Both the position numbers and the translations under genes were made by a program. Positions 25,702-49,357 of a stretch of DNA of 64,000 nt are shown here, in pieces. Position 1 is the stretch's first letter, and each line of letters opens with the position of its first letter. This DNA is from Selaginella moellendorffii (Eukaryota; Plantae; Lycopodiophyta). The stretch lies in the NCBI RefSeq assembly GCF_000143415.4, contig NW_003314451.1:37323-101322 (forward strand), read 5' to 3'. The notes below the pieces were generated by a model. It was not told the DNA's origin. It ran no database searches and was given only the letters and a program-made list of their open reading frames with translations.

Positions 25702-27939
25702 TTGCGTTGCAATGTGAGCGATGGCGGTGGATTCCAGCGCCAGGGCCAGGGCGCGGGCAATCGAAACGAGGTCAGTCACTGGAAATCTAGCCGCCGCGGC
25801 AATGCGGCGGCGCTGCTGGCGGCATTGAAGGCCGCGAGCAGAGCCAGAGACATCGAGCGCGGCCGCCAGGCGCATCTGGAAGCCATCCATGGCGGGCTGG
25901 ATTCCAGCGTTTTCGTGGCGAGCTCGCTCATCGATATGTATGCCAAATGCGGGAGAATGGAGGAGGCTAGGGCTGTGTTTGATGGGATTCTCCACCGTGA
26001 CGTGGTTTCTTGGAGCTCCATCATTCTTGGCTACGCACAGAACGGGCAAGGGGGGGTTGCGCTCGAGCTCTTTGTTGAAATGCAGCGTGCCAAGGCGGAG
26101 GATCCTTCTTATCCGCAGGCTCCGAATTCCCAGACTTTCGTGGCTGCGATCAGAGCTTGTAGCAGCATGATCAACGAGAAGAAGGAAGGAAAAGTTCGCG
26201 AGGATCGAATGGCTTGTCTGGAGAAAGGCATGGCCATCCATGCTCGAGCTCGGCTGGTCGGAGTGGACACGGATGGTTTCGTAGCATGTAGCTTGGTGGA
26301 CTTTTACGCGAAGTGTGGAAGCATGGTGACTGCTCGCTGGGTTTTCGATCGAGTGGACGATCGCAGCTACAGTGACTTGGTGCTGTGGACTGCTCTTATC
26401 TCAGGCTATGCACACAATGGTGACGGCGATATCGCTCTAGAGATTTTCGAGCAAGCGAGTGCCTTCTTCGATGCGAGCTCTTCTTCTCAGAGTTATTCGA
26501 CCCGGACGATTTTCTTAGCGGCCGTGAAGGCTTGCACAAGCATAGCAGCAAAAGAAGAAGTCACAGACAAGCACAGGCTCGACCGCAGCGATGCTAACAA
26601 GTTCCTCAAGGCTGTGTCGCTAGAGAAAGGAATGGCAGTGCACTCGGCAGCAGCAAGGCTCGGGTATATGACGGCAGCAGACATTTTCCTGATGAGCTGC
26701 TTGGTGGATTTCTATGCAAAGTGTGGAACCATGGTGGATTCGCAACGAGTTTTTGACAGCATGAGCCGTCACGACGTTGTCTCGTGGACTGCTCTTGTCT
26801 GGGGGTATGCACACAACGGGCAGGAGGAGATCGCTTTGGAAGTTTACGCTCGGGTCCAACAACAGGGCTGTGCTTCAAACTCCCAGACGTTCGTGGCTGC
26901 TCTCAAGGCCGTCGTCTGTCTCGCGGAGGCTGAAGTTGGCAAAGAGATCGACGGGAAAGTCGTCAAGGTGACGGCTTTGGAGAAAGGAATGGCGATTCAC
27001 TCCCAGGCAGCGAGCAGCGGCAAGCAGCATCACACGGAAACTTTCGTAGCGAACAGCCTGATCGACATGTACTCCAAGTGTGGAAGCATGGTGGACGCTC
27101 TGAGGAGTTTGGAGGCGATGGCTTCTCCTCCGGATATAATCTCGTGGACAGCTCTGATCCTCGGCTATGCCGACGCTGGAGAAGGCAACCGAGCTCTTGA
27201 GATCTTTGCTCGAATGCAAAGTCAAGGTTGCCGTCCAAACGCTCATACATTCGTGGCAGCCCTCAAGGCGTGTGGCAGCATCTCGGCTGTAGGAACTGGA
27301 AGAGTGATCCACGGAGAAATCTGCAAGTTCGGCCTGGAAACAACACTCACTGCTGGGAACAGTCTGGTCGACTTCTACGGGAAGTCCGGAAGCATGGTCC
27401 GAGCTCGCCAAGTTTTCGACTGCATTCCAGCGCTCGACGTTGCGAGTTGGACGTCGCTCATGGCCGGATACTGTCACCAAGGCGAAGCAATGGCAGTTCT
27501 CGACCTCTTCGTTGGGATGGTCGACCAAGGCGTGAATCCAAACGAGATAACTCTAGTGACAGTTCTCACGGCTTGCAGCCACGCCGGGCTCGTCCACAGA
27601 GGCAAGCGCTACTTCTCCGACATGAAAGAGAGATTTGGTCTCACTCCCAGGATTGATCACTACCACTGCCTCATCGATCTCCTGGGACGAGCAAACTTGC
27701 TGGAAGAAGCACTCAAGGTCGCGAAGACGATGCCAATGGAGGCTACTTCAGTGACATGGACGATCGTGTTGGTCGCGTGTGAGAAGTGGAAGAACATAGA
27801 AGTTGCGAAGATTGCATTTGAGGCACTGGTGGTTTTGGACGAGAACCAGGCGGGAGCTTACGTCCTCATGGCCAATGTCTATCGCCAACTTCGACCATTT
27901 GTAGTTTCATCTGGAGAAAACAAAACGATCAAGCTGTGA
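25702..27939 (+). CDS. PLS-class PPR protein with E-domain, no DYW (true start uncertain)
   Basis: P-L-S triplets (SLIDMYAKCG..A..VFD..DVVSW), LTACSHAG, DHYHCLIDLLGRA, and AYVLMANVY. Confidence 0.92.
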   Translation: MRCNVSDGGGFQRQGQGAGNRNEVSHWKSSRRGNAAALLAALKAASRARDIERGRQAHLEAIHGGLDSSVFVASSLIDMYAKCGRMEEARAVFDGILHRDVVSWSSIILGYAQNGQGGVALELFVEMQRAKAEDPSYPQAPNSQTFVAAIRACSSMINEKKEGKVREDRMACLEKGMAIHARARLVGVDTDGFVACSLVDFYAKCGSMVTARWVFDRVDDRSYSDLVLWTALISGYAHNGDGDIALEIFEQASAFFDASSSSQSYSTRTIFLAAVKACTSIAAKEEVTDKHRLDRSDANKFLKAVSLEKGMAVHSAAARLGYMTAADIFLMSCLVDFYAKCGTMVDSQRVFDSMSRHDVVSWTALVWGYAHNGQEEIALEVYARVQQQGCASNSQTFVAALKAVVCLAEAEVGKEIDGKVVKVTALEKGMAIHSQAASSGKQHHTETFVANSLIDMYSKCGSMVDALRSLEAMASPPDIISWTALILGYADAGEGNRALEIFARMQSQGCRPNAHTFVAALKACGSISAVGTGRVIHGEICKFGLETTLTAGNSLVDFYGKSGSMVRARQVFDCIPALDVASWTSLMAGYCHQGEAMAVLDLFVGMVDQGVNPNEITLVTVLTACSHAGLVHRGKRYFSDMKERFGLTPRIDHYHCLIDLLGRANLLEEALKVAKTMPMEATSVTWTIVLVACEKWKNIEVAKIAFEALVVLDENQAGAYVLMANVYRQLRPFVVSSGENKTIKL

Positions 27940-29448: not shown

Positions 29449-31125
29449 TTATCTTATGCTACTCGTACAAACAGTTCCCAGGGTACGTACGTCCGGCACA
29501 GCGCCAAGGAGGATGACGGCATCCATGGAGGAAACACTGTATGGCATCGTTGAGAGGAGCTCGCGGGCTTCGATCGCATAGCCCGATCGAGCGAGAGAGT
29601 CAATCACGCAGCAGTAGTGCTGTTTCGATGGCTTGATCTGGTAATCCATCGCCGCGGAGACAAAGAACTGGCGGGCAGCGGCCGGAGATCCCGTGTGGCT
29701 GCACGACGCGAGCACGGAGACGAAGCACACCGCGTCGGGAAGGTCTGTGAGGAGCATCTGGTGGAAGAGATCGCGAGCGCGGGCGTAGTGATTTGGGCCA
29801 TCGTGATCACTGGGATGGGACCTGTGGGCGGAGAGCATTGTGCTCCAGGAGAATCCATCGCGCTCCGGCATTCGATCGAAGAAGTGCTCCATTGCCACCA
29901 GGAGATCGCCCGATCGAGCGTGGGCTGTGAGGATCGCGTTCCACGACACGAGGCTCTTGATGGGCATGGAATCGAACAAAGCCCGCGATTGATCGAGGCA
30001 GCCGATGGATGCGAGTAGCGAAAGGATGGAATTCCACGAGATAAGGTCGTGCTCGGGCATGCAATCGAAGATCTCCCCGGCATGATCAGCGTCTAGAGCT
30101 TTCGCGTGCGCTGCAAGGATCGAGTTCCAGGAAACAATGCTGTGCTGGGGGATCTGATCGAAGAGCGATCGGGCTTCCTCGATCCGGCCTTCCAGGCCAA
30201 ATGCGGTGATTAGAGCAGTCCACGAGAAGAGATTGCGCTCCGGCATTCGCAAGAAGAGATTCTTGGCTTCGTCTAGCCTCCCGATTTGGGAAAATCCAGT
30301 GAGAATCGTGGTCCAGGAGATGAGATCTCGGCTCTCCATCGAATCAAAGAGAGACTTTACAATGTCAAGGTGTCCTTCTTGGGCATTTGCTGCGAGAACT
30401 ATGTTCCAACTTCGCAAGTTCCACTCTGGCATGGATCCAAACACAATATCTACCATTGTTACATTCTTAGTTTGTAGTGCTACTACTAGGTGTGTGTTCC
30501 AAGAGACAATGCTTCGCATTGGCATCAAATCAAAAGCATTTGCTACAGCCACAACATGCCCTGCCTCGGCAAATGCTGCTAAGAGAGAATTCCATGAGAT
30601 TAGATTGGGCTCTGGCATTCTATAGAACATCCGTTTTGCTTCTTCTAGAAATCCAGCCTTTCCAAGTCCATAGATCATCGAGGTCCAGGAAATCGTGTTC
30701 CAATGAGGCATAGAATTAAAAACCCCTTGCGCCTCGCGGAGATACCCACAGCGCATGTAAGCCGTGATCATGGCGTTGCAAGCGACGATGCTCATCGCTG
30801 GTTCTGGAATAGAATCAAAAACTAGCTTGGCAAGATCGAGATTGCCATTTTCGGAGCAAGCACACAGGAAAATCACCCAGGAGAATCTGTTCTTGCTGGA
30901 GATAGAATCGAAAACACGCTTGGCTTGATCCAGGCTGCCACAGCGCCCATACATCTCGATCAGCCGATTGGAGTGGAGGATACCGTCGCTGGATCGATCC
31001 AATTGCGAGAACTCAAGGAGCTGCGAGTGGATTGGATGCGCTTGAGCGAGAGAATGACAATTCATTCGCAATTGGGAAGATTTACCAAACACTGAGCTAG
31101 TGTTTGCTAAAGATTTACCAAACAA
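29449..31125 (-). CDS. PLS-class PPR protein, SS-motif array with a truncated E-domain (first ATG ~31065)
   Basis: Repeated FDxMPxx(N/S)xxSWN motifs, VLASCSHTG, KQHYCCVIDSLARSG. It stops before a complete E2 motif. Confidence 0.9.
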   Translation of the reverse strand: MFGKSLANTSSVFGKSSQLRMNCHSLAQAHPIHSQLLEFSQLDRSSDGILHSNRLIEMYGRCGSLDQAKRVFDSISSKNRFSWVIFLCACSENGNLDLAKLVFDSIPEPAMSIVACNAMITAYMRCGYLREAQGVFNSMPHWNTISWTSMIYGLGKAGFLEEAKRMFYRMPEPNLISWNSLLAAFAEAGHVVAVANAFDLMPMRSIVSWNTHLVVALQTKNVTMVDIVFGSMPEWNLRSWNIVLAANAQEGHLDIVKSLFDSMESRDLISWTTILTGFSQIGRLDEAKNLFLRMPERNLFSWTALITAFGLEGRIEEARSLFDQIPQHSIVSWNSILAAHAKALDADHAGEIFDCMPEHDLISWNSILSLLASIGCLDQSRALFDSMPIKSLVSWNAILTAHARSGDLLVAMEHFFDRMPERDGFSWSTMLSAHRSHPSDHDGPNHYARARDLFHQMLLTDLPDAVCFVSVLASCSHTGSPAAARQFFVSAAMDYQIKPSKQHYCCVIDSLARSGYAIEARELLSTMPYSVSSMDAVILLGAVPDVRTLGTVCTSSIR

Positions 31126-31310: not shown

Positions 31311-34070
31311 ATGGCGTCAGCGGGGTCTCCATCGGCTGCTGCTACCAAGATGAAGAAGCCGGCGAAACCAGCTCCCAAGGTGACTCTGGAGAGCTTTGTG
31401 AGCAAGATGCTGCCTCTTCTCGAGCTGGAGAAGGTGAGTGTGTGGATTCCTCAGCGATATTTCGAGTGATTTTGTGGATGGATTCGTGTGTAGGAGGCGG
31501 AGATTGCTGCGTCTACCGAAACAATTGGAATGACGAACCCTGACGTTCTACAGCAGCGTGGCTCGGCTGTGAAAGGATTAAAGTGTGTTGGTGTCGAGGT
31601 GAGTGGCTTGTACACTTTGCAGCTGCTTCATTTTTTTTTTTCTCGATTCGTCAGGCAGGATTGCTGGGAAAGTCTTTGCTTCTCTTGCAACCGAATTCTG
31701 GAGAGCTTCTTCCGTCTCACAAGGTACATTTCTTTACGTTCTTGTGGTGTTTAAGTGCATCATTTTCTTCATTGTTCTTGGTTGGCAGCTGTCTACACAC
31801 GATGTTGTGCTTTTAAAGCCAAACAAGGGAGGCTCGGCAGCTGAATCGCTGGGTCAAGGTGTTGTCTACCGCATAAAGGTGTGGCTGGATTGTGATTTGT
31901 GGCTTCCTGATGTTTTCGCTTGTCTTTTGGTGGTAGGATAAGTCTATCACGGTTGCTATGGATGATGTTCCAGACGAAGGCGTTAATTCGCTTCTTAGGC
32001 TGGAGAAAGTCGCGAATGAGGTTGGTACTCTAGTCACGAAGCTGATGATACAATGGCCTTGGTTCAGGTCACCTATCAAAGACTTAAAAGTACATTGTTG
32101 GACCTTGGCAAGGGTGTTTCAAGAGGTCCAGCAACTGATCTGGTTCCTGTGCTTTTCGGCGAGAAGCCTCCCTCGTTTTCCAAGACACATGCCACGTATG
32201 AACCTTACAACACAGAGCTTGACGAGTCTCAGGTGAGCGTTGTTGTCCATTAGTTTGCTTGAGAAATGATCTGCATCGTATCAGGTTAAAGCTGTCAAAA
32301 TGGCTCTAAGCGCACAAGATGTGATGCTACTTCATGGTCCGCCTGGAACTGGGAAGACGACGGCAGTGGTCGAAATTATTTTGCAGGAGGTTAAGCGGGG
32401 GCTCAAAGTTCTTGCTTGCGCTTCTTCGAACATTGCCGTGGACAACATGGTGGAAAGACTCGCCTGCCACAAGTCTGTATAATTTGCATGCGTCATTGTT
32501 TTTTGAATTTTATACGCAGGGTGAAGGTTGTGCGCTTGGGACATCCAGCTCGTCTTTTGCCGCAAGTTCTTGACTGTGCACTGGATGCTCAGGCAAGCAT
32601 TTTCAGTTTTCGTCAAGCTTTCTCAAAAGGGGATTCTTGCAGGTACTCAAAACCGACAACAGCTCGTTAGCCAAGGACATCAGAAAGGAGATTAGTGTAA
32701 GTCTTTCATTCCTATTGTTTTTCATGAACTGCATGGCATTCTCTTTCGTTGTCCAGGTTCTCAATGCGAAGATTCTAAAGGCCAAAGATCGAAAGAGCAG
32801 AGCCGAGCTAAGGAGAGAGCTGCGCCAATTGTCGAAGGAAGAGCGCCAAAGACAACAANNNNNNNNNNNNNNNNNNNNNNNNNNNNNNNNNNNNNNNNNN
32901 NNNNNNNNNNNNNNNNNNNNNNNNNNNNNNNNNNNNNNNNNNNNNNNNNNNNNNNNNNTCCTCTGTTGTGCTCACGACCTTGACTGGAGCCATGTCTGCA
33001 CAACTGCAAAAGGTTGACTTCGATGTCGTTGTTCTTGACGAGGCTGCTCAGGCCCTTGAGACGGCTTGCTGGATCGCCATTTTAAAGGTAATACTAGTCT
33101 TTCATTCTTGTTTTGGGATAGAACGAGTGTGTTTTTACGTACTTGTGCAGGGACGAAGATGTCTTCTCGCTGGCGACCATCTCCAGCTCGCTCCAACAGT
33201 ACTGAGTAAAGAAGCCGAGAAGCAAGGCTTTGGAACAACATTATTTGAACGCCTGGCAGGACTGTATGCCAGTCAAGCCATGACAATGCTCACAGTGCAG
33301 TACCGTATGCACGAGCACATTATGGATTGGTCTTCCCACGAGCTCTATGGCGGCAAGGTCGGTACGGATTGGACTTTTTTGAAACTGACAACGAGACATG
33401 CTTTTTACCAGATTCAAGCACACGAGCTTGTGGCAAGCCGCAAATTATTCGAACTAGATGGCGTCAAGAAAACTCCTGCAACTGAGCACACGCTCGTCCT
33501 CATCGACATCTGTGGCTGCGACATGGAAGAGTCAAAGGACGAGACTGAGAGCTCTTTCAACGAAGGCGAAGCCCGCATTGCTATTACTCACGCCCAAAAA
33601 CTCGTGGAAAGTGGAGTTAAGGCTATTGACATCGGAATAGTCACACCGTATGCGGCCCAGGTATCTATATATTGTTTCAGGGTTTGTGTTGTCTCTAAGT
33701 TTCACGCAATGCAGGTGAATGTTCTGAGGCGCATGAGAAATGAGGAACAGCGTTTACTGGAAGTGGAAATCAGCACTATTGACGGTTTTCAAGGCCGGGA
33801 GAAGGAAGCAATGATAATTTCCATGGTTCGCTCCAACGATAAAAAGGAGGTATGGTTTTCTTGTTGAGGTAGCAGTGAGACTAAAAGCTTATGCTTTAGG
33901 TTGGGTTCTTGAGTGACAAGCGGAGGATGAACGTTGCAGTTACGAGAGCAAAAAGGCAATGCTGTGTCATATGTGATTCGGACACTGTGGGAAAAGATCC
34001 ATTTCTCAAGCGGCTTTTGGATTATTTTGAGAAGCATGGAGAATATTGTTATGGTCTTTATTATCAATGA
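31311..34070 (+). CDS. IGHMBP2/SMUBP-2-like (Upf1-like SF1) helicase, multi-exon, with an N gap at 32859-32958
   Basis: [65 protein letters not shown], and [11 protein letters not shown]. Confidence 0.93.
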
Positions 34071-36384
34071 CTTAATTGCGGTTTCTCTGCTAACGTTTGA
34101 GACACATTGCCACGATCAATCTCATTGTTTCACTTGCGCTTACAGATCTATTTCAAGCTCTTGATCCTTGACCAGACGTGTTCTCTACCTTTCTTTTATC
34201 TATGATATTTGGATTAAAAGCTTTGGTTGTGAAACATCTTTCCATTCTATTACCACCTGCTTTCTAGTGCACCAGTAGTTCCACATCATATGCTCCAACG
34301 AGTGAGCATTCGTGCAGCCTTCTCCCCTCTATCACAAACCCGCTGCTGCAATCCTCTAATCGGGAGCCTCTGACAAAGTACCATCTCTACTGCAGAAGTG
34401 CTCTTCGGACTGGACGTCAACGATAAGCTCCCGACCTGGAACCGGCATACCAGGTGCCAGATTTTATACCAGGGTCTCAACAAGGAGAGTCATGGGTGAT
34501 GCAGCACACTTTGGACAAGCATGTTGCTGTCCCGCTGGGAAAGTCCCACCGGTGAGCAAATTGAGCAACAGAAAGATTACATTGACAAGACAAACAGTTC
34601 TTGGCCAGTGTTGTGCAGCTGATGTCCAAGTAGATGGAACCGACTCACTCGATACAGCCATGCAGTTCTCAAACAAGCTGAAAAATTAGCTGCTGATGGA
34701 TCTGGAAGAGGAATTCAAAGGAGGGGCACGATAATTCGTGGCTATATGTTTCTTACTTAAAGATCCTTATCGACCAGTATTTTGATTCCTCAGAGGAGTT
34801 TGCTTCCCTGGGAGAGCTGCAGAAGCACACATGCTATTTTCTTGTAAACCATAATGAGGATAGAAAAACTACGTAGATATCAAACTTGAACACCAATTTT
34901 AAGGTTTAATTCTTGCTGAAACTCTAGTCCCTAATAGTAAGTTTTCTCTGAAGCATGATTAAGAAATGATAAAAAAAAGTACTTGAAATCACTCTAAAAC
35001 TACTTTATTGATAATCACTTCAGATTTTTTGTATCCCGTTATCATTATTTTACAATAATTTAAACATCAGTTTGTATTGGTGATAAGTAAAAATAATAAC
35101 ATTAAACTTTGATTATAAATTGAATTAGTGAAAATTTAAAAGTAGAAAATCATGACTATTGGATTGAGGAAACTATAGCTATATTATTTACACCTCTCCT
35201 ACTACAAGTTTTCTAAAGAATAAAAAGTACTTAGAGGTTTTTGGTGTAGTATTGGATATACCTAAAATATTCTTAGATATTCTGGTATATTTTACTATTT
35301 AACAAATTAGCCTTTAATTTATAAACCTTTTCAAGTTAGTAAATACCCTTTACCTTTACCCTTTGAGCAAACACCTCCATACATATTCTAGCAGTGAATC
35401 AAAATTTGAAGTTAGAATAAAAGGATTATATATTATAGTAAAAATAAGTAAATTATTTTTACTTACTTACTTAAAAAAGTTAATATGTAATTTAATATTT
35501 TCTTATGGAGTTTTTTGCTTCATGTAGAGCCAAAAATGTCAAAACAAATGAAGTTGGATATATTGTGGCTAACACTTTATCAAAGTTTTTCAAGACTTAT
35601 GCATATATTTGCCCCAACCATTTTTTACGCTTTTCGATTGGTACAATGTTAGGAAATATCACTTCTTCCACTTATAATTGCATGTGCTTCAGTTCTATAT
35701 CATAAAATTTTTAATCAATTAGAAAAAGGTGTGCACTGTTGTTCATGGGTGTTTTCCTCTATACTTGAATTTGTATAAATCATCTCTTTAGTTATTTTCT
35801 TTAATTATTTACAGATATAAAAAGTATAAATATGATGCTATATACTAATATTATCATAATGAGATTTGATTTTAAATTCAAACCATTTCCTATTTTCTCT
35901 CTATATAAACTATGTTTATTTAGTATGGCTTAACTTGAAAATATCATAATTTATATTATAATACTAATAATACTAATTTTCTTACCATTCAATATAAAAA
36001 ATAAATCTAAAGTCTATTGTGATTTAGAAGAGTTTATTTTTCCTATTTCTTTCATGTAATATTTCAATATAAAAAAAATTAAAATTAATTTATACTAATT
36101 AAATTTTTAAAATAATAATTTTAAAAATGCCAAAAAAATTTATATATTAGATATATGGTAACTGTATTAAAAATTTAAATTTTAAATTATCTTTTATTTT
36201 ATTATAAATTAGAAGTTATAACATTTAGCTATTTTTATTAATATTTATTTTAATTTTAATTTTTTTGTGTAAGTTAATAGTGTAGTCAAATATAAATCTA
36301 AATTAAAAGTCATCTTAGTTTTGTAGTATTTTATATATAAAAGGTTTTAAAACTCTTTTTATCACACTCTTATTAGTTATAGAT

Positions 36385-37251
36385 ATGAAGTATTTTTATA
36401 TTTTATTCTTTTTTACATTTTGTATTAACATACAGATAATTTTTGCTCCAAAGAAGTTTCCTCCAACATTTGGAAGATTAAATATTTTAAATCAGCATGA
36501 TATTAAAACAATTATTGGAGCTATTTATGGTTTAATATTTACAATTGATCGTGCAAAAAATGATTATATTGTTCAAACATTTAGTGAACAAACTGAAGTG
36601 ATTACATCACAAGGAATTGTTGATTTAATAATTAAAGTTAAGCCAAATTGTGATGGTGACGGTACTGAAACTATTAAAGGTGAGTATTTAATAGAAGGTT
36701 TTAATAGAATTGTGAGTAGTACTGTTACTAGTATTTCTGAAAATCTTTCAGACTTTTTTCAAAAAGAAACCAATAAATTTTCTATACAGTATAAACTTAG
36801 AGAAAGGTCTGAACTTTTATTAGAAAAAAGACATGAAAAATATCATACTTTATTTTTATTTTGTCGTCTTGAAAGTAGCAATTTATATTCTGGTTTTAAA
36901 ATCTATAGAGATCAATTTTTAAGATCACCAAATAATAAGAATAGTTTGTTATTGGATTCAAGATGTAACCTTATCTTATATTCAAAAAATTTTAAAATTT
37001 GGGAATCTGAAACATCAAGAAATACTTATAAAAATTGCTTTTTATTATTAATGTTAAATGGTAATTTGGTTTTGTTTTATGATGAAGAAATTATATGGGA
37101 TACTAAAAGTTTTTGTAAGGAAAGTCACTGTACTTTGATATCAGTGTTCACTATTCAAAATGATTGTAATTTAGTAATTTATAATGCAAAATATCCTAAT
37201 ACTGTATTATGGTCGTCAAAAACCTCACATCATAAGTTCTGTTATATTTAA
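36385..37251 (+). CDS. Secreted two-domain protein A: unknown N-domain plus bulb-type (GNA-like) mannose-binding lectin
   Basis: Hydrophobic signal peptide and three B-lectin subdomains (LLLDSRCNLILY..IWES, LMLNGNLVLFY..IWDT, IQNDCNLVIY..VLWSS). TATA lies ~50 nt upstream, and the ORF is preserved in two copies. Confidence 0.85.
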   Translation: MKYFYILFFFTFCINIQIIFAPKKFPPTFGRLNILNQHDIKTIIGAIYGLIFTIDRAKNDYIVQTFSEQTEVITSQGIVDLIIKVKPNCDGDGTETIKGEYLIEGFNRIVSSTVTSISENLSDFFQKETNKFSIQYKLRERSELLLEKRHEKYHTLFLFCRLESSNLYSGFKIYRDQFLRSPNNKNSLLLDSRCNLILYSKNFKIWESETSRNTYKNCFLLLMLNGNLVLFYDEEIIWDTKSFCKESHCTLISVFTIQNDCNLVIYNAKYPNTVLWSSKTSHHKFCYI

Positions 37252-37504
37252 TTATTAAAAAGCATTATCGTTCTAGGTTTACTTAATAAAATTTAGTAAT
37301 TTTAGCTAAATAATAATAACCTATCATTTGTGATCTCCTCTAACAATTATTCAAGTAGTGGTGGAGTTGCTATTATTCTTTTAGATGTATGTAAATGTAT
37401 ATTTTTTTAAAATACCTGTTGCTCCTACTAATAATAATATAAAGTTTCTTAATGTTAACTGTTAAAAATAATTGATAGTTTAATTCCATATACACATCTT
37501 CTAA

Positions 37505-37916
37505 TCAAGCAAAGTTAGTAGAACCAGCAAAAGGAGCAGCAAGCCTGGACAACAATCCGCTGTTGGCAGCATCACTGTTGCTGCTGGAAGACAATGATGA
37601 TCCTTGGTTACTACACGAGCTCAAATTCTTGGTGGAAACGTTCCTTGGCACGTCGACAGTGAGGCACAGATCTACATTCCCACGAAGATCCAAGTTCTCG
37701 CCTAAGATGAAATCTCTTTGGAAAGGCACTGGCCCGGAGAGAAGATTGTTGCTGAGATTGAGATGATAGATGTTGGAGAGCATACCGCAGAAAGCTCAAA
37801 TCCTCACGAGCTCCGGCGATCACACTTGCATCTTGTAGGACGTGGAGGCACAGAAACACCTAGCGCAGTTTGGTTCTGAGTCGTCCTCGGGTACACGTCT
37901 GATGTCATGAGGTGAG
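37505..37916 (-). pseudogene. 3' fragment of an LRR receptor-like protein (TMM/PII-2/RLP29-like tail)
   Basis: IYHLNLSNNLLSGPVPF..F..GENLDLRGNVDLC, with no upstream LRRs. Confidence 0.7.
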
Positions 37917-38601
37917 ACTGACTACGAGAGATGCTTTCTACCAGATTCAAGCACACGAGTTTGTGGCAAACCGCAAATCATTCGAACTAGATGGCGTCAA
38001 GAACTCCTGCAACTGAGCACACGCTCGTCCTCATCGACATCTGTGGCTGCGACATGGAAGAGTCAAAGGACGAGACTGAGAGCTCTTTCAACGAAGGCGA
38101 AGCCCGCATTGCTATTGCTCACGCCCAAAAACTCGTGGAAAGTGGAGTTAAGGCTATTGACATCGGAATAGTCACACCGTATGCGGCCCAGGTATCTATA
38201 TATTGTTTCAGGGTTTGTGTTGTCTCTAAGTTTCACGCAATGCAGGTGAATGTTCTGAGGCGCATGAGAAATGAGGAACAGCGTTTACTGGAAGTGGAAA
38301 TCAGCACTATTGACGGTTTTCAAGGCCGGGAGAAGGAAGCAATGATAATTTCCATGGTTCGCTCCAACGATAAAAAGGAGGTGTGGTTTTCTTGTTGAGG
38401 TAGCAGTGAGACTAAAAGCTTTTGCTTTAGGTTGGGTTCTTGAGTGACAAGCGGAGGATGAACGTTGCAGTTACAAGAGCAAAAAGGCAATGCTGTGTCA
38501 TATGTGATTCGGACACTGTGGGAAAAGATTCATTTCTCAAGCGGCTTTTGGATTATTTTGAGAAGCATGGAGAATATTGTTATGGTCTTTATTATCAATG
38601 A
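37917..38601 (+). pseudogene. Duplicated 3' half of the helicase gene
   Basis: Near-identical to 33385-34070 including introns, with a 2-nt deletion at ~38000. Confidence 0.92.
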
Positions 38602-40149
38602 CTTAATTGCGGTTTCTCTGCTAATGTTTGAGACACATTGCCACGATCAATCTCATTGTTTCACTTGCGCTTACGGATCTATTTCAAGCTCTTGATCCTT
38701 GACCAGACGTGTCTCTACCTTTCTTTTATCAAATGATATTTGGATTAAAAGCTTTGGTTGTGAAACATTTTCCCACCTCTGGTTCTTACACCTGTGGAAT
38801 AAAGTACCACCTGCTTTTAGTGCAGCAGTAGTTCCACAGGTGATCATTCTGACCTTGACATGTTCCAACGAGTAAGCATTCGTGCAGCCTTCTCCCCTCT
38901 ATCACAAACCCGCTGCTGCAATCCTCTGGTTCATAATCGGGAGCCTCTGACAAAGTACCATCTCTACTGCAAGGAGGTGAACCCGGTAGTGATCTTCGGA
39001 CCGGACGTCTACGATAAGACGACGTCTCGACCTGGAACCAGCATACCAGGTACCACACAGGAAGTCACCACCTCCTGATCGATCTCGGACACGTGAACAA
39101 ACGAAAATTCCACACCACCTCTCGCTTTGCGCAATCTGCATGAAGGAAACAGAGACAGTAACACACGTCCTGAAAGCTTGCCCTGCATACACAGAATTCC
39201 GCACGCCTGACATCGACTGGAACGCGGAGACACACTCCTTGCAGATAAGACTCGCATGGAGCTACGACGCCAAATACATATTTCACATAGGTCTCGAACA
39301 GCCACGGAAGAGAAGACGAGCAGACATGGCAAGTGACTCAAAAAAAACATATAGATAGATAGATAGATAGATGGAGATCCATGCTGAATTTACCTTCGTA
39401 ACTCCACTCTGTCATCCAACACGGTTGCTACAAGAAATGAGCATTGATTTCAGTTCAGCCATCCGCTCAAGGTGGCAAGATTTTTAAAATCCTGGCTATT
39501 TTCCTGATCAGATCCTACAGTGAAAGCTCTCACCAGTTCCTCTCGGACACTTCTGTTAGTGGCTCAATCTCCCATCTGAGACTTTTGTGTCCAGCGGTGG
39601 ATTTAAATGTCGAACAATTCGTCTTGCTTCAGTAAGTTCTCACCGAGTTTGACCACCTTATCAATTCATTAAAGATTTTATAGCTGCGCTATGCAGAAAC
39701 TCATGGTTTGGATTTTATACCAGGGTCTCCAAGGAGAGTCATGGGTGATGCAGCGCACTTTGGACAAGCATGTTGCTGTCCCACTGGGAAAGTCCCAGTG
39801 GTGAGCAAATTGAGCAATAGAAAGATTATATTGATAAGACAAACAGTTCTTGGCCAGTGTTGTGCAGCTGATGTCTAAGTAGATGGAACCAACTCACTCG
39901 ATACAGCCATGCAATTCTCAAACAAGTTGAAAAATTAGCTGTTGATGGATTTGGAATTCAAAGGAGGGGCACAGTAATTTGTGGTTATATGTTTCTTACT
40001 TAAAAGGGATAGTCTAAAGTTGAGTAACTTTGCATAAACCAACTCAAGCCAACAAGTCTTGGTGGGGAAAAAAAAAAGGATATTAGGGAAAGGTGTTCCT
40101 TATATCTTCCTCATGCCTCGGCCCTAGTGGTATAGCTTGTCTCTTAGGA

Positions 40150-42300
40150 CCTTCTAATGTCACTATCAAATGGTGATATACTTAAAAGTTAGATTAAAGA
40201 ACAGTTCCAATACCAAATTGTAAGCAATTAATTTTTCATTCTACTTTAATCACTTAACCACACCTTTGACCATTTGGAGGAGTCTCACTCACAACTTCCA
40301 TAAATTTTATTTAGGACTTGGGGATGTACTAGCTTTGTAATATTTTTGGTCACTACACTAGGGGATTGTTCTTCTTCTTTTCCATAATCTAAGACTTTGG
40401 GACAACATTTTGAAACACTGTGGCCCTACATGAATTTTGTATATACTCTCATCACCTTCTACTTTTAGGTGCCCTAGCCATATGGCTAGAGCGAGGTTTT
40501 GATGAACTACACTAAATATCCAAGTAAGTAGTGCCACCCACACTTGGATTAGGAACATTAACCATTTGATCTTCTAGGGGAGCTAGAGTTAGTTTTTGAA
40601 CACTTCGCTAAGCTACCTTGTTTATCTGTCCATATTTACTCTAGCCTTGAACTCCTTAGTGATTATATTATCACGCAATGCATGGGTATGGCCTTCCTTG
40701 GTCACATTGGTCTTTCCTGGCTAAATTCGAATCCTCCCCTTACTATACTTTTAGAGCTCACCAAACCTTCTATGGTGTGAGAGATGAATGCTTTGGACTT
40801 TCACTCTCGAACTTGGACTTGGACTCGAACTTAGACTCGGTCTTGGACTTAGACTCAAACTCAATCTCGGTCTCAATCTTGGCCTTAGTCTTGGTCTCAG
40901 TTTTAACTTCGGACTCTATCTCAAATCTATCTTGGACTCGACTTTGGACTCCATTTTGGGTCCATCTAGGATTCCATCTTGGGTCCATCTTGACTCCATC
41001 TTGGACTTCTTCTCAAACTCTGTTTCAGACTCCATTTTGAACTCTTTCTTAAACTCCATCTTGGACTTCTTCTCAAACTCTGTTTCAGACTCCATTTTGA
41101 ACTCTTTCTTAAACTCCATCTCGGACTCTGTCTTGGGTCCATCTTAAACTCTTTCTCAGACTCCATCTCAAACTCTTTTTCAGACCCTATCTCGACACTT
41201 CCATGTGTCATGTGTTGGTCTTATTGTGTTTTTTTTCTAGAGACTCACTTATTGTTTACTTCGTGCTCGTTCCTCGAGCACTTTATTAGGAGTTCCACTC
41301 CCACTCTCAACTATCTATGTCAGAGATTTTAGTTTAATGTGTTACACTCATTTAGCTTCTGCTTTCGCCACTACTATGTGGCATTCTTTTGGCTCCACTT
41401 TGGGGCTTAGGGATTTATATCTCACAATAGTCTAAAGTTTCTTATGGACACCTCTTCTTTATTAAAGGTTTCTCTTGAGAGTATGACCTTTTTATTTGAG
41501 GTTGTATTCATACCAAACTTAGGCTAGATACACACTATTTTCTCTTAAAGTTGATAATCTTCTTTTATTGCCAAGCATTTGGCATTGTAAAGGAGTTTTC
41601 ACTCAATTCATTGGCCAGCTTTGGTGGCAATATGTCCACCCTCCTATATTCTCTTGTTTACTAACATGTGGACACTTTTGGGCTTCTATATATACCATAG
41701 ATGCTTCAACTCACAAAGGAGAGTTTTTTGCCTATGCTTTTTGCACTAACTATTCATATTCATCTCTTGACTAGATTTCTTGGGAGATCACTCTATTCAA
41801 ACCTAAGAATGTCTAACCCAAAATATTCAAATACCTTTAATTGATTGAAAAAAATGGTGCACTTTTGTTCATAGCCATTTCCCTTTATATTTAAACCCTT
41901 ATAAATTATTTTTTGAGTTGTTTTTTTTGGTTGTTTACAATCCACTACACTTCTTTATAAATTCACACCCTTATGAATGGAAGTTAAGAACTGTAGCTCT
42001 CTCTCGAGCCTCATAGTTAGAATAAATTGGACCATCATATTTCAACATATAATATTAACCAACTAACAAAGTCAGACCTAAGACCACTCTAATACCAAAT
42101 ATAAAAATTTTGAATTTGAACTTCTCAAAAGTTACTTAATCCAACATTATTTAAACTAACACTATCCAAACCAAATGATGTTTAACCCTAAGTATCTTAA
42201 GACCTTTAATCAAATCGAAAAAGGGTGCACTATTGTTTATGGGTGTTTTCTTTTATACTTAGATTCATATGAATTATCTCTTAAGCCATTTTCTTTATTT
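40150..42300 (-). mobile_element. Highly decayed Gypsy-type pol remnants (RNase H end, integrase)
   Basis: GGHIATK-like integrase zinc-region motif at ~41620-41640. RNase H-end-like segments recur at ~35700-35800, ~41850 and ~42220. Confidence 0.5.
40800..41190. repeat. Low-complexity 6/12-bp periodic repeat containing an exact 60-bp tandem duplication
   Basis: CTCCATCTTGGACTTCTTCTCAAACTCTGTTTCAGACTCCATTTTGAACTCTTTCTTAAA at 40994 and 41054. Confidence 0.85.
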
Positions 42301-42893
42301 TCTTACAAATATAAAGAGTATAGATATGATACTATATACTAATATTAGCATAATGAGATTTTAATTTTAAATTCAAACCACTCCTTCTTCTCTCTTATAT
42401 ATAATCTATGTTTATTTAGTATGGCTTAACTTGAAAATATCATATTCTATATTATATGATAATACTAATAATACCATATTTTCTTACCATTCAATATAAA
42501 ATAAATCTAAAGTCTATTGTGATTTAGAAGAGCTTATTTTATTATTTATGTAATATAATATTTCATTATAAACAAAATAATAATAATTCATATTATATTT
42601 AGTTAATTTTTTTATAATGATCATTTTTAAAATGCTAAGAACAAAAATTATATATTATATATATATATATATGAAATGTAATACATATTTAAATTTCGAA
42701 CTATATTTTTATTTTATTATAAATTAGAAGTTATAACATTTAGCTATTTTTATTGATATTTGTTTTATTTTTATTTTTTGTGTAAGATAATAGTGTAGTC
42801 AAATGAAAATCTAAATTTAAAGTCATCTTAGTTTTTTAGTTTTTTATATATAAAAGGTTTTACAACTCTCTGTTTTTCATATTATTTATAGAT

Positions 42894-43760
42894 ATGAAGT
42901 ATTTTTTTATTTTATTCTTTTTTACATTTTTAATTAACATACAGATAAGTTTTGCTCCAAAAAAGTTTCCTCCAACATTTGGAAGAATAAATATTTTAAA
43001 CCAGGATGATATTACAAAAATTATTAAAACTATTCATGGTTTAATCTTTACAATTGATCATGCAAAAAATAATTATATTGTTCAAACATTTAGCGAACAA
43101 GCTGAAGTGATTACATCACAAGGAATTGTTGATTTAATAATTAAAGCTAAGCCAAAATGTGATGGTGACGGTACTGAAACTATTAAAGGTATGAATTTAA
43201 TACTAGGTTTTGAAAGAATTGTGAGTAGTACTGTTGCTATTATTTCTGAAAAACATTCAGACTTTTTTCAAAAAGAGACTGATAGATTTTCTATACAGTA
43301 TAAACTTAGAGAAAGGTCTGAACTTTTATTAGAAAAAAGACATGAAAAATATCATACTTTATTTTTAGATTGTCGTCTTGAAAGTAGCAATTTATATTCT
43401 GGTTTTAAAATCTATAGAGATCAATTTTTAAGATCACCAAATAATAAGAATAGTTTGTTATTGGATTCAAGATGTAACCTTATCTTATATTCAAAAAATT
43501 TTAAAATTTGGGAATCGGAAACATCAAGAAATACATATAACAATTGCTTTTTATTATTAATGTTAAACAGTAATTTGGTTTTGTTTTATGGTGAAGAAAT
43601 TATATGGGATACTAAAAGTTTTTGTAAGGAAAGTCATTGTACTTTGATATCAGTTTTTACTATTCAAAATGATTGTAATTTAGTAATTTATAATGCAAAA
43701 TATCCTAATATTGTTTTATGGTCATCTAAAACTTCACATCATAAGTTTTGTTATATTTAA
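42894..43760 (+). CDS. Secreted two-domain protein B: unknown N-domain plus bulb-type lectin (paralog of 36385-37251)
   Basis: Same 288-aa length with no indels, about 30 substitutions, and QNDCNLVIY retained. Confidence 0.85.
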   Translation: MKYFFILFFFTFLINIQISFAPKKFPPTFGRINILNQDDITKIIKTIHGLIFTIDHAKNNYIVQTFSEQAEVITSQGIVDLIIKAKPKCDGDGTETIKGMNLILGFERIVSSTVAIISEKHSDFFQKETDRFSIQYKLRERSELLLEKRHEKYHTLFLDCRLESSNLYSGFKIYRDQFLRSPNNKNSLLLDSRCNLILYSKNFKIWESETSRNTYNNCFLLLMLNSNLVLFYGEEIIWDTKSFCKESHCTLISVFTIQNDCNLVIYNAKYPNIVLWSSKTSHHKFCYI

Positions 43761-44184
43761 GTAAAAAGCCTTATGGTTTGAATATTTACTTATTATATTA
43801 AATAAAATTTAGCTAAATAATAATAACCTATCATTTGTGATCTGCTTTGAAGTAGTGGTGGAGTTGCTATTATTCTTTTAGATGTATGTAAATGTATACT
43901 TTTTTCAAATACCTGTTGCTCCTACTAATAATAATATAAAAGTTTCTTAATGTTAACTGTTAAAAATATTTGATAGATTAATTTCATATACATATGTTCT
44001 AATCAAGCAAAGCTAGTAGAAGCACCAACAAAAAGAGCAGCAAGGATCTCTACTTAGATAACAATCCACTGTTGGCAGCATCACTATTGTTGCTGGAAGA
44101 CAATAATGATCCTTGGTTACTACACAAGCTCAAATTCTTGGTGGAAACATTCCTTGGCACTTTGATAGTGAGGCACAGATATAC

Positions 44185-47100
44185 AACTTTAATGCTGGAG
44201 GGCATGTTCTGTGGTGGTCTAATATAGATTTTACTGAATAGTGGGAGCAATGACAACTTTGTTTTAACAAAGTTTGTTATGGAGCATGGCTTGGTCAGAC
44301 GAGGAGTTCTTCCATACATAGTGGAAAGTGCAGCTACCTCTACTTAGCATTTCAATACTTGTGTCAAGGGGCTGGAAGTGTTGGTTGGCAAAACCACACT
44401 TGTGGAGACTTTTTATTTAACGGATATCCATTGTGTGGATTTCATTCTTGGGATGTCATAGTTGATGAAGGTGGATCCAAAGATAAAGTGAAGTATTAAA
44501 CATGTCTCATTGACGTACGGTGGTATTAAAGATGTGTAGTTTCGAGAAGGAGTTCAACCTTCAGTTGTTATGCTCTCTACTACATCTTTGAAGCGGGCTT
44601 GTCGTAATAGAAAAGCACTTTCGAGTTACTTGTTGTTTGTTCATGACTTGAGGAACTAAGGCATGTGTGGGGGAGAAGCAGCAATATGGGATGTACTTGA
44701 CGAGTTTTCTGATGTTTTCTATCTAAACTTCCTCATGGGTTGCCTCAATTACGAGGTGTGGAGCATGGGATTATGTTGAAGCTGGGGACATAGCCAATTT
44801 ACTAGCATCCATTTCAGTTAAGTTATGCAGAGAAGCAAAAAGTTCAATAACAAGTCAAAGAGTTACTTGAGTTTGGATTTATTCAGCCAAGTAAGTCTCT
44901 GTTTGGTGCTCTGGTCTTGCTTGTGAAGAAAGACAGTTCAATGCGGATCTATATTGACTACCTTGCCTTGAACAAAAAGATAATGAAAGATAAAATGCCG
45001 ATGCCACATGTGGATGATATCCTAGATAAGCTTAGTGAAGCATAAGTGTTTACCAAGATTGATCTGAGGAGTGGATATCATCAGATTGCAATGGATGATG
45101 CGTCTATCTCCATGATGGCATTCAACACAAGCTTCAAACATTTTGAGTTTATAGTAATGCCATTTGGTTTAACGAATGCACTAGCCATATTTACTCAGTT
45201 GATGACAGAGGTATTTAGGCGTTATTTTCATGAGTTTGTGGAGATTTTTTTGGACGATATTCTTATTTTCAGCAAGAATATGGAGGAGCATAAGGTGTAT
45301 TTGAGTAAGGTTCTTTTGTTACTCCATGACAACAAACTTTATATGAAAAAGACAAAATATGAATTTGCAAAGTTGGAGGTAGAATATCTAAGCCATATTA
45401 TGACATCTAAAGGTGTCAAGACAAATCCAAGGAAGGTGGTTGTGGTGGAAAATTGGCCTATACTAACTATAGTGGCCAAGTTACATGGTTTTCTTGGTAT
45501 GGCTAGTTACTATTGATATTTCTAGCATAAGTTTGTAGAGGTGGCTATTCCTTTTACACAATTGTTACGCAAGAACGTGTCATTCGAGTGAAAGAAGCCA
45601 CAAGAGGAGAGTTTTGTGGCGCTGAAATGATTGTTGAGCGAGGCTTCAATGCTTCACATTGCTGATCCATTGAAACTTTACGAGGTGACATGTGATACAA
45701 GTGGTTATCCACTGGGAGGAGTTTTCATGCAAAAGAGACAGCCTATTGCATATGAAAGTCAAACTTTGAATCCTACGGAGCAACATTATTCCACATATGA
45801 ACAAAAGTTACTCTCTATTGTTCATGCTTTGTGGACATGGCGGCACTATCTTTATGGTGCAGTGTTTGTGGTGTTGAAGGATCACAAACCATTTGTGTAT
45901 CTTTTCATACAAAAGGAGTTGAACACTAGGCAAGCTCATTGGATGGTCAAACTCATGGAGTTTGGGGAGTTTTCTATTAAGCAAAATTAAATGTGGTGGT
46001 AGATGCTTTATTTTATGGTCATCATGTGACGGCATTACAAACACGGTTTTATCATCATTTGAGTAAAGTGGTCAACAAATTTGGGTAGTTGGTTGAGCAT
46101 GCTCAAGCTCAGGATGTTGAGATGGCTTCTTTGCAAGACTAGATGAAAACCCCTTTCTCATTGGTGGATGGGATTCTTTATTGCAATGGCTGTGTATATT
46201 TGCCATAGGTGGATACGTTAATTACTCAAGTTTTATCCCACTATCATGATCGTCCAGAAGTCTATCATTTTGGGGGGAAGAAAATGTATGAGTTGATTAA
46301 GAGCAATTTTTATTGGAGGAATATGAAGGTTGATATCCTCGAGTATTGTGAATCATGCAAGCTCTGTCAGTGGGTTAAGGTGCCATAGAAGAAGTCGGGA
46401 GGACTTTTGCAACCTTTACCTATTCCTCAGAGCCATTGGTGTAATATCTCTATAGACTTCATCACTTATTTGTTACAAACACAGAGATAAAAGGAGTAAA
46501 TATGGGTCATAGTGGATCAATTGACAAAATATGTGCAGTTGTTGGCTCTTTGGAAGACTGTTACTGTCTCAAACTTGGCTGCAGTTTACTTGGAGAAGGT
46601 TTTTCCTGATTTTTGTTTGCCAAAGGACATCATTAGTGATCGAGATTTAAAGTTCACAAGTGGATTTTGAAAGAGCTTTGTGAAGACTATGTAAGTGACT
46701 TTGAAACTCTCAAGTGGAGATCATCCTCAAATGGATGAGTGAACTAAGCATATGAATCAGGTGGTGGAGGATATGCTACATTATAGCATTGGTCAAAGGC
46801 AAAGATAGTGGGATTTATATCTTCCGTTGGTGCAATTTGCTTATAACAATAGCCAACACAGTGGAACCAAGCTAAGTCCTTACTTTGCCATATTTAGAAG
46901 GCATCCCTAAGCAATAACAGAGTTGGGATTGCATTTGAGTAAAGACATTCAAGATAAACTTGATTATGAGATGACTGATTTGGCCACAAAACTTGATGAG
47001 ATTCTGATGGTGTGCAAACGGAATTTGTAAGCAGCTCATGATAGAGTGGAAAAGTTTGCTAATGAGTATCGCCAATTTCGGGAATATAAGGTAGGTGATC

Positions 47101-47688: not shown

Positions 47689-47896
47689 GAAATCTCTTTG
47701 GAAAGGCACTTACCCAAAGAGAAGATTGTTGCCAAGATTGAGATGAGAGATGTTGGAGAGCGCACTGCAGAAAGCTTAAATCCTCACAAGCTCTGGCGAT
47801 CACACTTGCATCTTGTGGGACGTGGAGGCACAGAAACACCTCGTGCAGTTTGGTTTTGAGTCGTCCTCGGGCACACATCTGATATCATGAGGTGAG

Positions 47897-48560
47897 ACTG
47901 ACTACGAGAGATGCTTTTTACCAGATTCAAGCACACGAGTTTGTGGCAAACTGCAAATTATTCGAACTAGATGGCATCAAGAAAACTCCTGCAACAAAGC
48001 ACACGCTCATCCTCATCGACATCTGTGGCTGCGACATGGAAGAGTCAAAGGACGAGACTGAGAGCTCTTTCAACAAAGGTGAAGCCTGCATTGCTATTGC
48101 TCACGCCCAAAAACTCGTGGAAAGTGGAGTTAAGGCTATTGACATCGGAATAGTCACACCGTATGCGGCCCAGGTATCTATATATTGTTTCAGGGTTTGT
48201 GTTGTCTCTAAGTTTCATGCAATGCAGGTGAATGTTATGAGACGCATGAGAAATGAGGAACAACGTTTACTGGAAGTGGAAATCAGCACTATTGATGGTT
48301 TTCAAGGCTGGGAGAAGGAAGCAATGATAATTTCCATGGTTCGCTCCAACAATAAAAAGGAGGTGTGATTTTCTTGTTGAGGTAGCAGTGAGACTAAATG
48401 CTTTTGCTTTGAGTGACAAGCAGAGGATGAACGTTGCAGTTACGAGAGCAAAAAGACAATGCTGTGTCATATGTGATTTGGACACTGTGGGAAAAGATCC
48501 ATTTCTCAAGCGGCTTTTGGATTATTTTGAGAATATTGTTATGGTCTTTATTATCAATGA
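47897..48560 (+). pseudogene. Third, more decayed copy of the helicase 3' half
   Basis: Same start point as 37917. It has lost the last splice acceptor and carries a 9-nt deletion. Confidence 0.92.
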
Positions 48561-49357
48561 CTTAATTGTGGTAAGCTCCTCGTTTCTCGTTTGAGACACA
48601 TTGCCACGATCAATCTCATTGTTGCACTTGTGCTTAGGGATCTATTTCAAGCTCTTGATCCTTGACCAGACGTGTTCTCTACCTTTCTTTTATCTATGAT
48701 ATTTGGATTAAAAGCTTTGAAACATTTTAAGTTTGGTGTTTCTATTACCACCTGCTTTCTAGTGCACCAGTAGTTCCACATCACATGCTCCAACTAGTGA
48801 GCATTCGTGCAGCCTTCCCCTCTATCACAAACCCGCTGCTGCAACCCTCTGATTCATAATCGGGAGCATCTGACAAAGTACCATCTCTAGGAGGTGAACC
48901 CGGAAGTGATGTCTACAATACGCTCTCGACCTCATACCATCACCAGGTCGGACGACAATTCCACATCACCTCCGGCTCTGCCATGAAGGAAACAGAGACA
49001 GTAACACACCTCCTGAAAGCTTGCCCTGCACACACAGAATTCCGCACACCCACGTAGCTCCATGCAAGTGATGTATTTGACGAGAGTTGCTGCTGTGTCC
49101 TTATTTGCAAGGAGTGTGGGTGTCTCCGCGTTCCAGTCGATGTACGCCAAATACATATTTCACATGCAATGCAGGCAATCGTAATGCGAGATCTCGAACA
49201 AGAGAAGACGAGCAGATAGGGCAAATGAGCCGAGCAAAACAACAACGAAGACAGCACGAATAAATCCAAATTGCATTTTTGCATCCATCAGTCTCGATGG
49301 GCACCGCAATACTCTCAAAAACAGCATATAGACACTGCTTTTTTCTTGAGTTGGAGC

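Follow-up and report, generated by a model that had tools for sequence, protein, structure and literature searches.

A putative family of two-domain lectins with a DUF26-like predicted fold, encoded in AT-rich islands of the Selaginella moellendorffii genome

Two groups of plant proteins are the closest described systems to the genes presented here. Gastrodianin (GAFP-1), from Gastrodia elata, is a monomeric antifungal GNA-type lectin with a beta-prism II fold. DUF26 is a land-plant-specific domain defined by the motif C-8X-C-2X-C; among the proteins that carry it, Gnk2 is a mannose-binding antifungal lectin, and the DUF26 domains of PDLP proteins resemble the fungal lectins LDL and Y3 (Vaattovaara et al., PMC6368629). 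Mannose binding is reported for the DUF26 proteins Gnk2 and maize AFP1 (PMC6368629, PMC5923269), as is binding of a DUF26 protein to the fungal CBM1 motif (PMC9521807). Here we describe two unannotated genes in a 64,000-nucleotide stretch of the Selaginella moellendorffii genome (contig NW_003314451.1, positions 37,323 to 101,322, assembly GCF_000143415.4; the window hereafter), whose products would join a GNA-type lectin to a domain with a predicted DUF26-like fold. We consider it somewhat better than an even chance that they belong to a lineage-specific family of secreted two-domain defence lectins evolving in chromatin like that of transposable elements (TEs).

The two open reading frames (ORFs), at 36385-37251 and 42894-43760, both on the plus strand, run from ATG to stop over 288 codons without introns, as an earlier note made from the sequence alone had stated. 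Their proteins are identical at 258 of 288 positions (90%) with zero gaps. The other five frames of each ORF contain 15-47 stops; given the pooled base frequencies, stops would make up about 9% of random codons, and 288 open codons would arise by chance with a probability of ~1e-12. The layout of both copies is as follows (GC3, GC content at third codon positions; pLDDT, predicted local distance difference test).

36385..37251, plus strand: copy A, full intronless coding sequence, 288 amino acids (aa) plus stop; GC 24%, GC3 13.8%
36385..36447, plus strand: putative signal peptide, residues 1-21, hydrophobic N-terminus MKYFYILFFFTFCINIQIIFA followed by PKK; helix at residues 2-20 in the model
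36448..36804, plus strand: N-domain, residues 22-140, beta-alpha-beta-beta-alpha-beta-beta, DUF26/Gnk2-like predicted fold, with a single conserved Cys (C89)
36805..36870, plus strand: linker, residues 141-162, containing RERSELLLEKR; predicted disordered (pLDDT 28-30), with the conserved Cys160 at its end
36871..37248, plus strand: GNA-type (beta-prism II) lectin, residues 163-288, with the canonical QNDCNLVIY at residue 258
42894..43760, plus strand: copy B, full intronless coding sequence, 288 aa plus stop, laid out as copy A
42894-42956 (signal), 42957-43313 (N-domain), 43314-43379 (linker) and 43380-43757 (lectin), plus strand: parts of copy B

Relatives could be found for the C-terminal half. 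A phmmer search of 1.84 billion cluster representatives gave 1112 B-lectin matches, all of them to residues 163-286 and none a self-match. The Pfam B_lectin profile (PF01453) was matched by copy A with 34.1 bits, above the cut-off of 32.4, and copy B, with 28.7, fell just below it. When a family profile was compared with the PDB, the best matches were GAFP-1/gastrodianin (1.3e-17) and GNA (3.8e-14), and there were others to garlic and daffodil lectins, curculin and LlpA-type bacteriocins. Identity of the lectin half to everything outside the family is ~30%, and that of residues 163-288 to gastrodianin is 26-28%. The lectin core of the predicted model (pLDDT 86-94) aligned with gastrodianin (1xd5/1xd6) over 110/110 residues, with Z 19.6 and a root-mean-square deviation (rmsd) of 1.1 A, and S-receptor kinase ectodomains were matched as well (5gyy, Z 13.7; 6kyw, Z 12.8).

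As in the GNA family, C194 and C218 appear to be position-equivalent to the classical GNA disulfide, and one or two QxDxNxVxY motifs are present: one in the window copies and two in each of four paralogs described below (L001, L002, L004 and L005). The Pfam match and a motif scan of the window copies bear out the original description of this region as a B-type lectin with one canonical and two degenerate sites. Judging from motif and fold, the domain may bind mannose-type glycans through its one or two intact sites. Secretion would be a further trait shared with gastrodianin. Unlike gastrodianin, the lectin is here the C-terminal half of a larger protein and carries four extra conserved cysteines (C244, C249, C261, C286); in contrast to both gastrodianin and GNA, the first motif is degenerate, as is the second in the window copies.

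The N-domain behaved differently in sequence searches. Pfam gave nothing for residues 22-160 of the two copies, and the six family N-domains had no match at E up to 10. No N-domain relative was found by a word-indexed search of 5.8 billion proteins (using copy A, and residues 20-150 of L002), by the phmmer search, which matched the lectin part only, or by back-translated pattern scans of IMG/VR, the JGI metagenomes and 185,579 prokaryote genomes (GTDB). Sequence searches of the PDB at E up to 10 returned only chance matches for the N-domain (E 1.7-2), none of them to Gnk2 or PDLP. Protein-language-model look-alike searches yielded no usable match, or scores <= 0.86 to STT3-type clusters, which were treated as noise, and an ESM Atlas shape search responded mainly to the lectin half.

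The predicted structure was more informative. A first AlphaFold run with 5 family sequences reached a pLDDT of 46, too poor for a structure search, and gave the order helix-strand-strand-helix-strand-strand, also seen in the later model. This second model was based on a hybrid multiple sequence alignment (MSA) in which six family members were joined by 41 lectin homologues, the latter aligned to the C-terminal half only, and had a mean pLDDT of 75.8, with ~80 for the elements of residues 25-140 and ~30 for residues 141-162. In it, the N-domain is predicted to consist of two helices packed on a five-stranded sheet. Residues 25-140 were compared exhaustively with 48,161 PDB representatives, and the top 1000 Foldseek chains were re-aligned separately. 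The best matches were PDLP8 (6grf; Z 9.5 in the exhaustive comparison and up to 9.8 in the Foldseek set, rmsd 2.5 A over 97 residues), PDLP5 (6gre; Z 9.4 and up to 9.8, respectively, rmsd 2.6 A over 98 residues) and Gnk2 (4xre and 3a2e; Z 8.8-8.9, rmsd 2.9 A, 100/108 residues). In the exhaustive comparison they were followed by the fungal lectin Y3 (5v6i, Z 6.4), Zt-KP4 (8acx, Z 5.7), LDL (4nds, Z 5.5) and KP4 (1kpt, Z 4.8), with an unrelated background at Z <= 4.6. These neighbours agree with PMC6368629, where DUF26 is likewise linked in structure to Y3 and LDL. For the N-domain part, the Foldseek set contained PDLP5/8, Gnk2 and Zt-KP4, all others having Z <= 3.6.

The N-domain had been put down as unassignable to any family. 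That stands insofar as no sequence relative was found, whereas its predicted structure does match the DUF26/Gnk2 fold (Z 8.8-9.8). We file it under the label 'DUF26-like fold' and not as a member of the DUF26 family, because the C-X8-C-X2-C motif is missing in all six members and there is no PF01657 signal. The predicted topology, the length of ~110 aa, the plant origin and the likely secretion are shared with DUF26 proteins (PDLP5/PDLP8, CRRSPs, Gnk2). Unlike them, the N-domain has one conserved cysteine of the six found in DUF26, no similarity detectable with profile hidden Markov models, and is fused to a GNA lectin. Such a fusion is not reported in the lectin and DUF26 surveys consulted; the N-domain resembles a known plant fold in a combination for which those surveys give no precedent. 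In the model, Cys89 lies at the end of beta3, some ten residues before helix 2, apparently, by comparison with the published disulfide map (PMC6368629), at the place of the first DUF26 motif cysteine, which could hint at divergent descent from DUF26. A likeness to killer-toxin folds, also suspected at the outset, may be present in a loose form. With Y3, LDL and the KP4-type toxins the N-domain shares a broad alpha/beta sandwich and presumably the nature of a small secreted protein, but these matches (84-104 residues aligned, rmsd 3.0-4.0 A, no sequence similarity) are clearly weaker than those to DUF26, those to KP4-type toxins lie near background, and no KP4 Pfam match was found in the N-domains. 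Nothing in them implies that the domain acts as an ion-channel toxin in the manner of KP4.

The two genes are not alone. At least six intact members (the window copies included) and one decayed member were found on different scaffolds of GCA_000143415.2 (S. moellendorffii). The intact ORFs, of 287-304 aa, share one architecture, and pairwise identity among family members is 25-47%. The members outside the window are listed below.

L001:4491-5354, GL377565.1: full-length family ORF, 287 aa
L002:4446-5312, GL377566.1: full-length family ORF, 288 aa
L004:2389-3303, GL377571.1: full-length family ORF, 304 aa
L005:2398-3291, GL377953.1: full-length family ORF, 297 aa
L003:3446-4318, GL377594.1: seventh member, colinear, in a single open frame, decayed

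L003 lacks a start codon upstream of residue ~84; its third sugar motif (VFNNFKLKLY) is degraded and its C-terminal Cys missing. By its sequence it is probably a decaying paralogue, and its decay suggests birth-and-death turnover of the family. All six intact members begin with a hydrophobic stretch that would act as a signal peptide and direct secretion, and all six share eight invariant cysteines (C89, C160, C194, C218, C244, C249, C261, C286), including the two, C89 and C160, whose conservation had been noted from the window copies.

The nearest annotated relatives are the lectin-only models SELMODRAFT_73481, _76109, _19170, _29034 and _8734, three of them retrieved with phmmer and two more by profile search. 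At the corresponding loci of GCA_000143415.2, these truncated models turned out to be the tails of longer ORFs with the family architecture. Existing annotation thus holds lectin-only fragments at five loci, and both window copies are entirely unannotated. The full-length proteins (both window copies, L001, L004, L005) were absent from a 15-billion-protein collection, and a literature search for the five identifiers found no paper naming them; at full length the family is undescribed, as proposed. In a tree of lectin domains all six members grouped as one clade (SH-aLRT 92), set apart by a long branch from the other sequences, none of which came close; the tree gave the family no placement, its deep nodes being unresolved. 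The best reading is that the family is Selaginella-specific and that the two window genes are recent tandem duplicates. In the same tree, protein P0212, recorded as 'Nesterenkonia sphaerica lectin' on a 526-bp contig, nested among the Zingiberales (Curcuma/Zingiber) lectins and is probably plant contamination in a bacterial assembly.

No N runs occur in the family loci, and ordinary GC-rich plant genes (PPR, rhodanese, SET) are found a few hundred bases away or less, which makes contamination or mis-joining unlikely. In the window, there are no assembly gaps between 32958 and 54245. The idea of a contaminant contig, which the earlier note had raised against its own proposal, was rejected, since no N runs separate the genes from plant neighbours of normal GC content and gap-free joins to ordinary plant genes exist at five loci.

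The window locus is a tandem segmental duplication with later insertions, and the pair of copies could be used to compare the rates of change of the genes and their flanks. The features that define it are the following.

35698..37676, plus strand: duplicated block A, matching 42193-44185 with 88.5% identity (self-BLAST); spans the gene with its promoter region and the beginning of a minus-strand leucine-rich repeat (LRR)-like fragment
42193..44185, plus strand: duplicated block B, self-BLAST partner of block A
34910..37476, strand not applicable: AT-rich, CpG-depleted island around copy A, GC ~15-26%
42094..43985, strand not applicable: AT-rich, CpG-depleted island around copy B, defined by composition
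33380..34394, plus strand: fragment of a superfamily 1 (SF1) helicase (AAA_11/AAA_12), repeated at 37913-38971 and 47893-48889, which frames the tandem duplication; the three repeats are partial domains

Jukes-Cantor (JC) distances between the two units were 0.14 in the AT-rich upstream flank (31 gap columns), 0.11 in the AT-rich downstream flank (14 gap columns) and 0.10 in the LRR-like fragment (11 gap columns), compared with 0.064 in the ORF, which had 0 gap columns against 56 in the flanks together. The ORF has thus diverged at half the flank rate, and its synonymous divergence (dS 0.11) is about that of the flanks. The two halves of the protein differ in this respect: for residues 141-288 the ratio of non-synonymous to synonymous divergence (dN/dS, Nei-Gojobori) comes to 0.11, against 1.12 for residues 22-140, with 26 non-synonymous and 6 synonymous differences in the N-domain vs 6 and 11 in the lectin part (Fisher p = 0.0036). 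Of the 26 replacements in the N-domain, 14 are located in the two predicted helices. In helix 1 they recur with a periodicity of 100 degrees per residue (permutation p = 0.01), whereas helix 2 shows no significant periodicity. The lectin half is under constraint and the helices of the N-domain change rapidly. Taken together, these data agree with the initial picture of real, constrained genes encoding a signal-peptide-like start, a fast-evolving N-domain, a flexible linker and a GNA-type lectin.

The composition of these genes is unusual. The window copies have a GC content of 24% and GC3 of 13.5-13.8%, against 54-62% in the three PPR genes of the window, and in all six members GC3 is 10-14%, against 54-70% in four PPR genes (window and L001) taken as the host reference; that the ORFs are far more AT-rich than other genes here had been one of the initial observations. 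For the pooled family, the observed/expected (O/E) ratio of CpG is 0.24 (TpG 1.17, CpA 1.34), compared with 0.98 in the PPR genes of the window and L001 and 0.03-0.29 in non-genic AT-rich DNA of the window. The bias extends to the proteins: F, Y, M, I, N and K (FYMINK) make up 34-43% of residues in the family vs 28% in plant GNA lectins, and G, A, R and P (GARP) 7-10% of the lectin part vs 24%. In the window and the five loci, ORFs of more than 100 aa with GC below 32% were family members only. The notion of a large TE-rich AT compartment did not survive: at three paralogous loci (L001, L002, L004) the AT island extends no more than 0-350 bp beyond the gene. At L001:1081-1347, an 88-aa ORF with a CCHC zinc-knuckle-like motif lies in DNA of 23-32% GC; it looks like a retroelement remnant, probably, and this supports the idea that AT-rich stretches of the genome are decayed retroelements.

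The simplest reading of these dinucleotide patterns would be that the family genes share the mutational regime of the methylated repeat DNA of the host, with C-to-T decay at methyl-cytosines, and that selection keeps frame and fold. We take S. moellendorffii to methylate its own repeats; a literature search on AT-rich DNA or methylation in Selaginella found nothing specific. A parallel may be drawn with the 'two-speed genomes' of fungi, in which effector genes reside in AT-rich isochores degraded by repeat-induced point mutation (RIP). Fast-evolving secreted-protein genes, a decayed-repeat composition and broken elements alongside are common to both. In contrast to them, the host here is a plant, the islands can be gene-sized and lie between ordinary genes, and the proposed driver, suggested by CpG O/E, would be methyl-cytosine deamination; RIP is not known in plants. 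An organellar origin of the genes was rejected, as the organelle genomes of S. moellendorffii are GC-rich.

If the proteins are secreted defence lectins, as we favour, they could work as follows. The signal peptide would lead them into the secretory pathway, and the conserved lectin would anchor them on microbial or herbivore glycans. The DUF26-like domain, in which neither the cysteine motif nor any detectable similarity of sequence is left, would provide another binding module, directed at a glycan or at a protein of the pathogen, with its fast-evolving helical face as a second, diversifying recognition surface. The disordered, variable linker would tether the two domains and permit bivalent engagement, resulting in heterobivalent binding or cross-linking of the pathogen surface, or in the neutralisation of a secreted pathogen protein. 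As to the genes, residence in TE-like chromatin would push synonymous sites, and in part amino-acid content, towards AT through C-to-T decay, purifying selection would hold frame and fold, and the family would turn over through tandem duplication and loss. A glycan-targeted defence role, already put forward in the earlier note, is still the most reasonable inference, and the family is probably defensive. One may go further and imagine a family kept in methylated TE-like chromatin at ~12% GC3, missed by gene predictors and yet functional, epigenetically gated by stress or demethylation, fast on one surface, and with an N-domain that is an ancient cysteine-free offshoot of DUF26; this we regard as tentative and, on balance, unlikely.

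Several points weigh against this interpretation. None of the six N-domains matched PF01657 at E up to 10, and a regular-expression search for C-X8-C-X2-C was negative in 6/6 members; the N-domain assignment rests on a structure predicted from six family sequences, with Z 9-10 being modestly above a common Z 7-8. An N-domain dN/dS near 1 fits relaxed constraint equally as well as diversifying selection. The methylation explanation comes from dinucleotide statistics alone, which would look no different had the genes come from an AT-rich foreign donor poor in CpG. The binding of sugars and an action against fungi are predicted properties. Finally, a search of sequencing runs with the window stretch found no RNA run; one small run, of unknown kind, contained 28% of its words.

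The composition also invites the explanation of a foreign origin, by which the fusion gene would have come, once or repeatedly, from an AT-rich donor (giant virus, protist, arbuscular mycorrhizal fungus or other symbiont) and kept the donor's composition. The gap in GC3 to the PPR genes, with sharp, gene-sized island borders, the shift to FYMINK residues, the failure of gene predictors to recover the full genes, and the long branch of the lectin clade outside the sampled plant lectins would all fit. We nevertheless find it distinctly improbable: no N-domain relative appeared in any of the collections searched, which included viral, metagenomic and prokaryotic ones, the phmmer matches being confined to the lectin part; with ~30% identity to all outsiders no donor stands out for the lectin; CpG is depleted to the same degree in AT-rich DNA of the host itself; and the best fold match is to a domain reported as land-plant-specific (PMC6368629). 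Moreover, the members form a single, internally deeply diverged clade, which speaks against recent transfers that have yet to ameliorate, and a single old transfer should have drifted to host composition. The same composition and CpG depletion could be expected of silent relics, that is, young unbroken pseudogenes or TE cargo that serve no function today; in their favour the lack of an RNA run holding the window stretch, the N-domain dN/dS of ~1 and the one member without start codon and last sugar motif could be adduced. Six deeply diverged members, all open where ~9% of random codons would be stops, a lectin dN/dS of 0.11 with zero indels beside heavily gapped flanks, and the conservation of eight cysteines and the sugar motifs make this very unlikely.

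The role of the proteins could also be other than defensive. They might be apoplastic glycan sensors similar to PDLPs or CRRSPs, with an endogenous signalling or cell-wall function, or take part in reproduction or self-recognition like the B-lectin ectodomains of S-locus receptors; the top fold matches are indeed PDLP5/8 ectodomains, whose ligands are unknown, and S-receptor kinase ectodomains match the lectin half. We hold this to be doubtful, as the proteins lack transmembrane and kinase regions, the antifungal gastrodianin is the lectin nearest in structure, and birth-and-death (L003), tandem duplication and rapid surface change are more typical of defence families. A different mode of action had been suggested in the earlier note, i.e. 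that of an AB-type toxin cut at the KR of the linker, in which the lectin B-chain would deliver a toxic A-chain held by a Cys89-Cys160 disulfide. Such a bridge between the domains may exist, both cysteines being invariant, the linker is exposed and disordered in the model, and the N-domain has a distant structural resemblance to KP4-type toxins. However, the linker KLRERSELLLEKR is identical in both window copies and unrelated, with a different length, in L001, L002, L004 and L005. KR/EKR, and RERSELLLEKR as a whole, are limited to the two recent copies among the six members, and a conserved KR processing site was rejected on these grounds. With KR not conserved and the linker variable, the evidence for a cleaved AB toxin is removed. 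The top fold matches are a non-enzymatic lectin and receptor ectodomains, not toxin A-chains, no enzyme family was found for the N-domain in Pfam or PDB searches, and no catalytic motif is apparent. The cleaved toxin is, in our opinion, highly improbable.

Should the defence-lectin interpretation be correct, the known diversity of DUF26 would gain a cysteine-poor form fused to a GNA lectin, and two fold types of plant antifungal lectins in one chain would offer a concrete protein for bivalent glycan recognition. Owing to their composition, at least six intact genes of a model lycophyte are not recovered at full length in its public genome annotation. This compositional feature is striking and unexplained, and lifts the family above a routine lectin paralogue; it raises the question of how coding genes can endure only 150-350 bp from normal genes while bearing the dinucleotide pattern of methylated junk DNA, and whether chromatin regulation is involved.

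Other features were observed around the lectin genes. Short minus-strand ORFs at 37505-37783 and 44050-44319 resemble the C-terminal end of an LRR ectodomain (LSNNLLSGPVP...) and are co-duplicated with the lectin genes; Pfam gave zero matches for the first, and they are probably gene fragments. The insertion between the duplicated units contains a low-complexity minisatellite (40678-41211) with repetitive overlapping ORFs on both strands (LGLGL..., DSILDS...). Retroelement remnants lie at 45046-45516 and 57692-58261 (an RVT_1 fragment and a gag aspartyl-protease fragment). N runs are located at 32859-32958 (100 bases) and 54245-55230 (986 bases), and the long 'ORFs' on both strands at 54234-55250 are artefacts of the second. 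An inverted repeat pair of ~2 kb in AT-rich DNA (55234-57187 vs 61749-63703) has 72-73% identity, and tandem or dispersed repeats of ~400-900 bp, with 78-89% identity and a spacing of ~1.3-2.7 kb, occupy 10462-17090. Intact PPR genes, one of them with an E motif, are found in the window at 8268-10169, 25702-27939 and 29449-31125, with another at L001:2384-4240.

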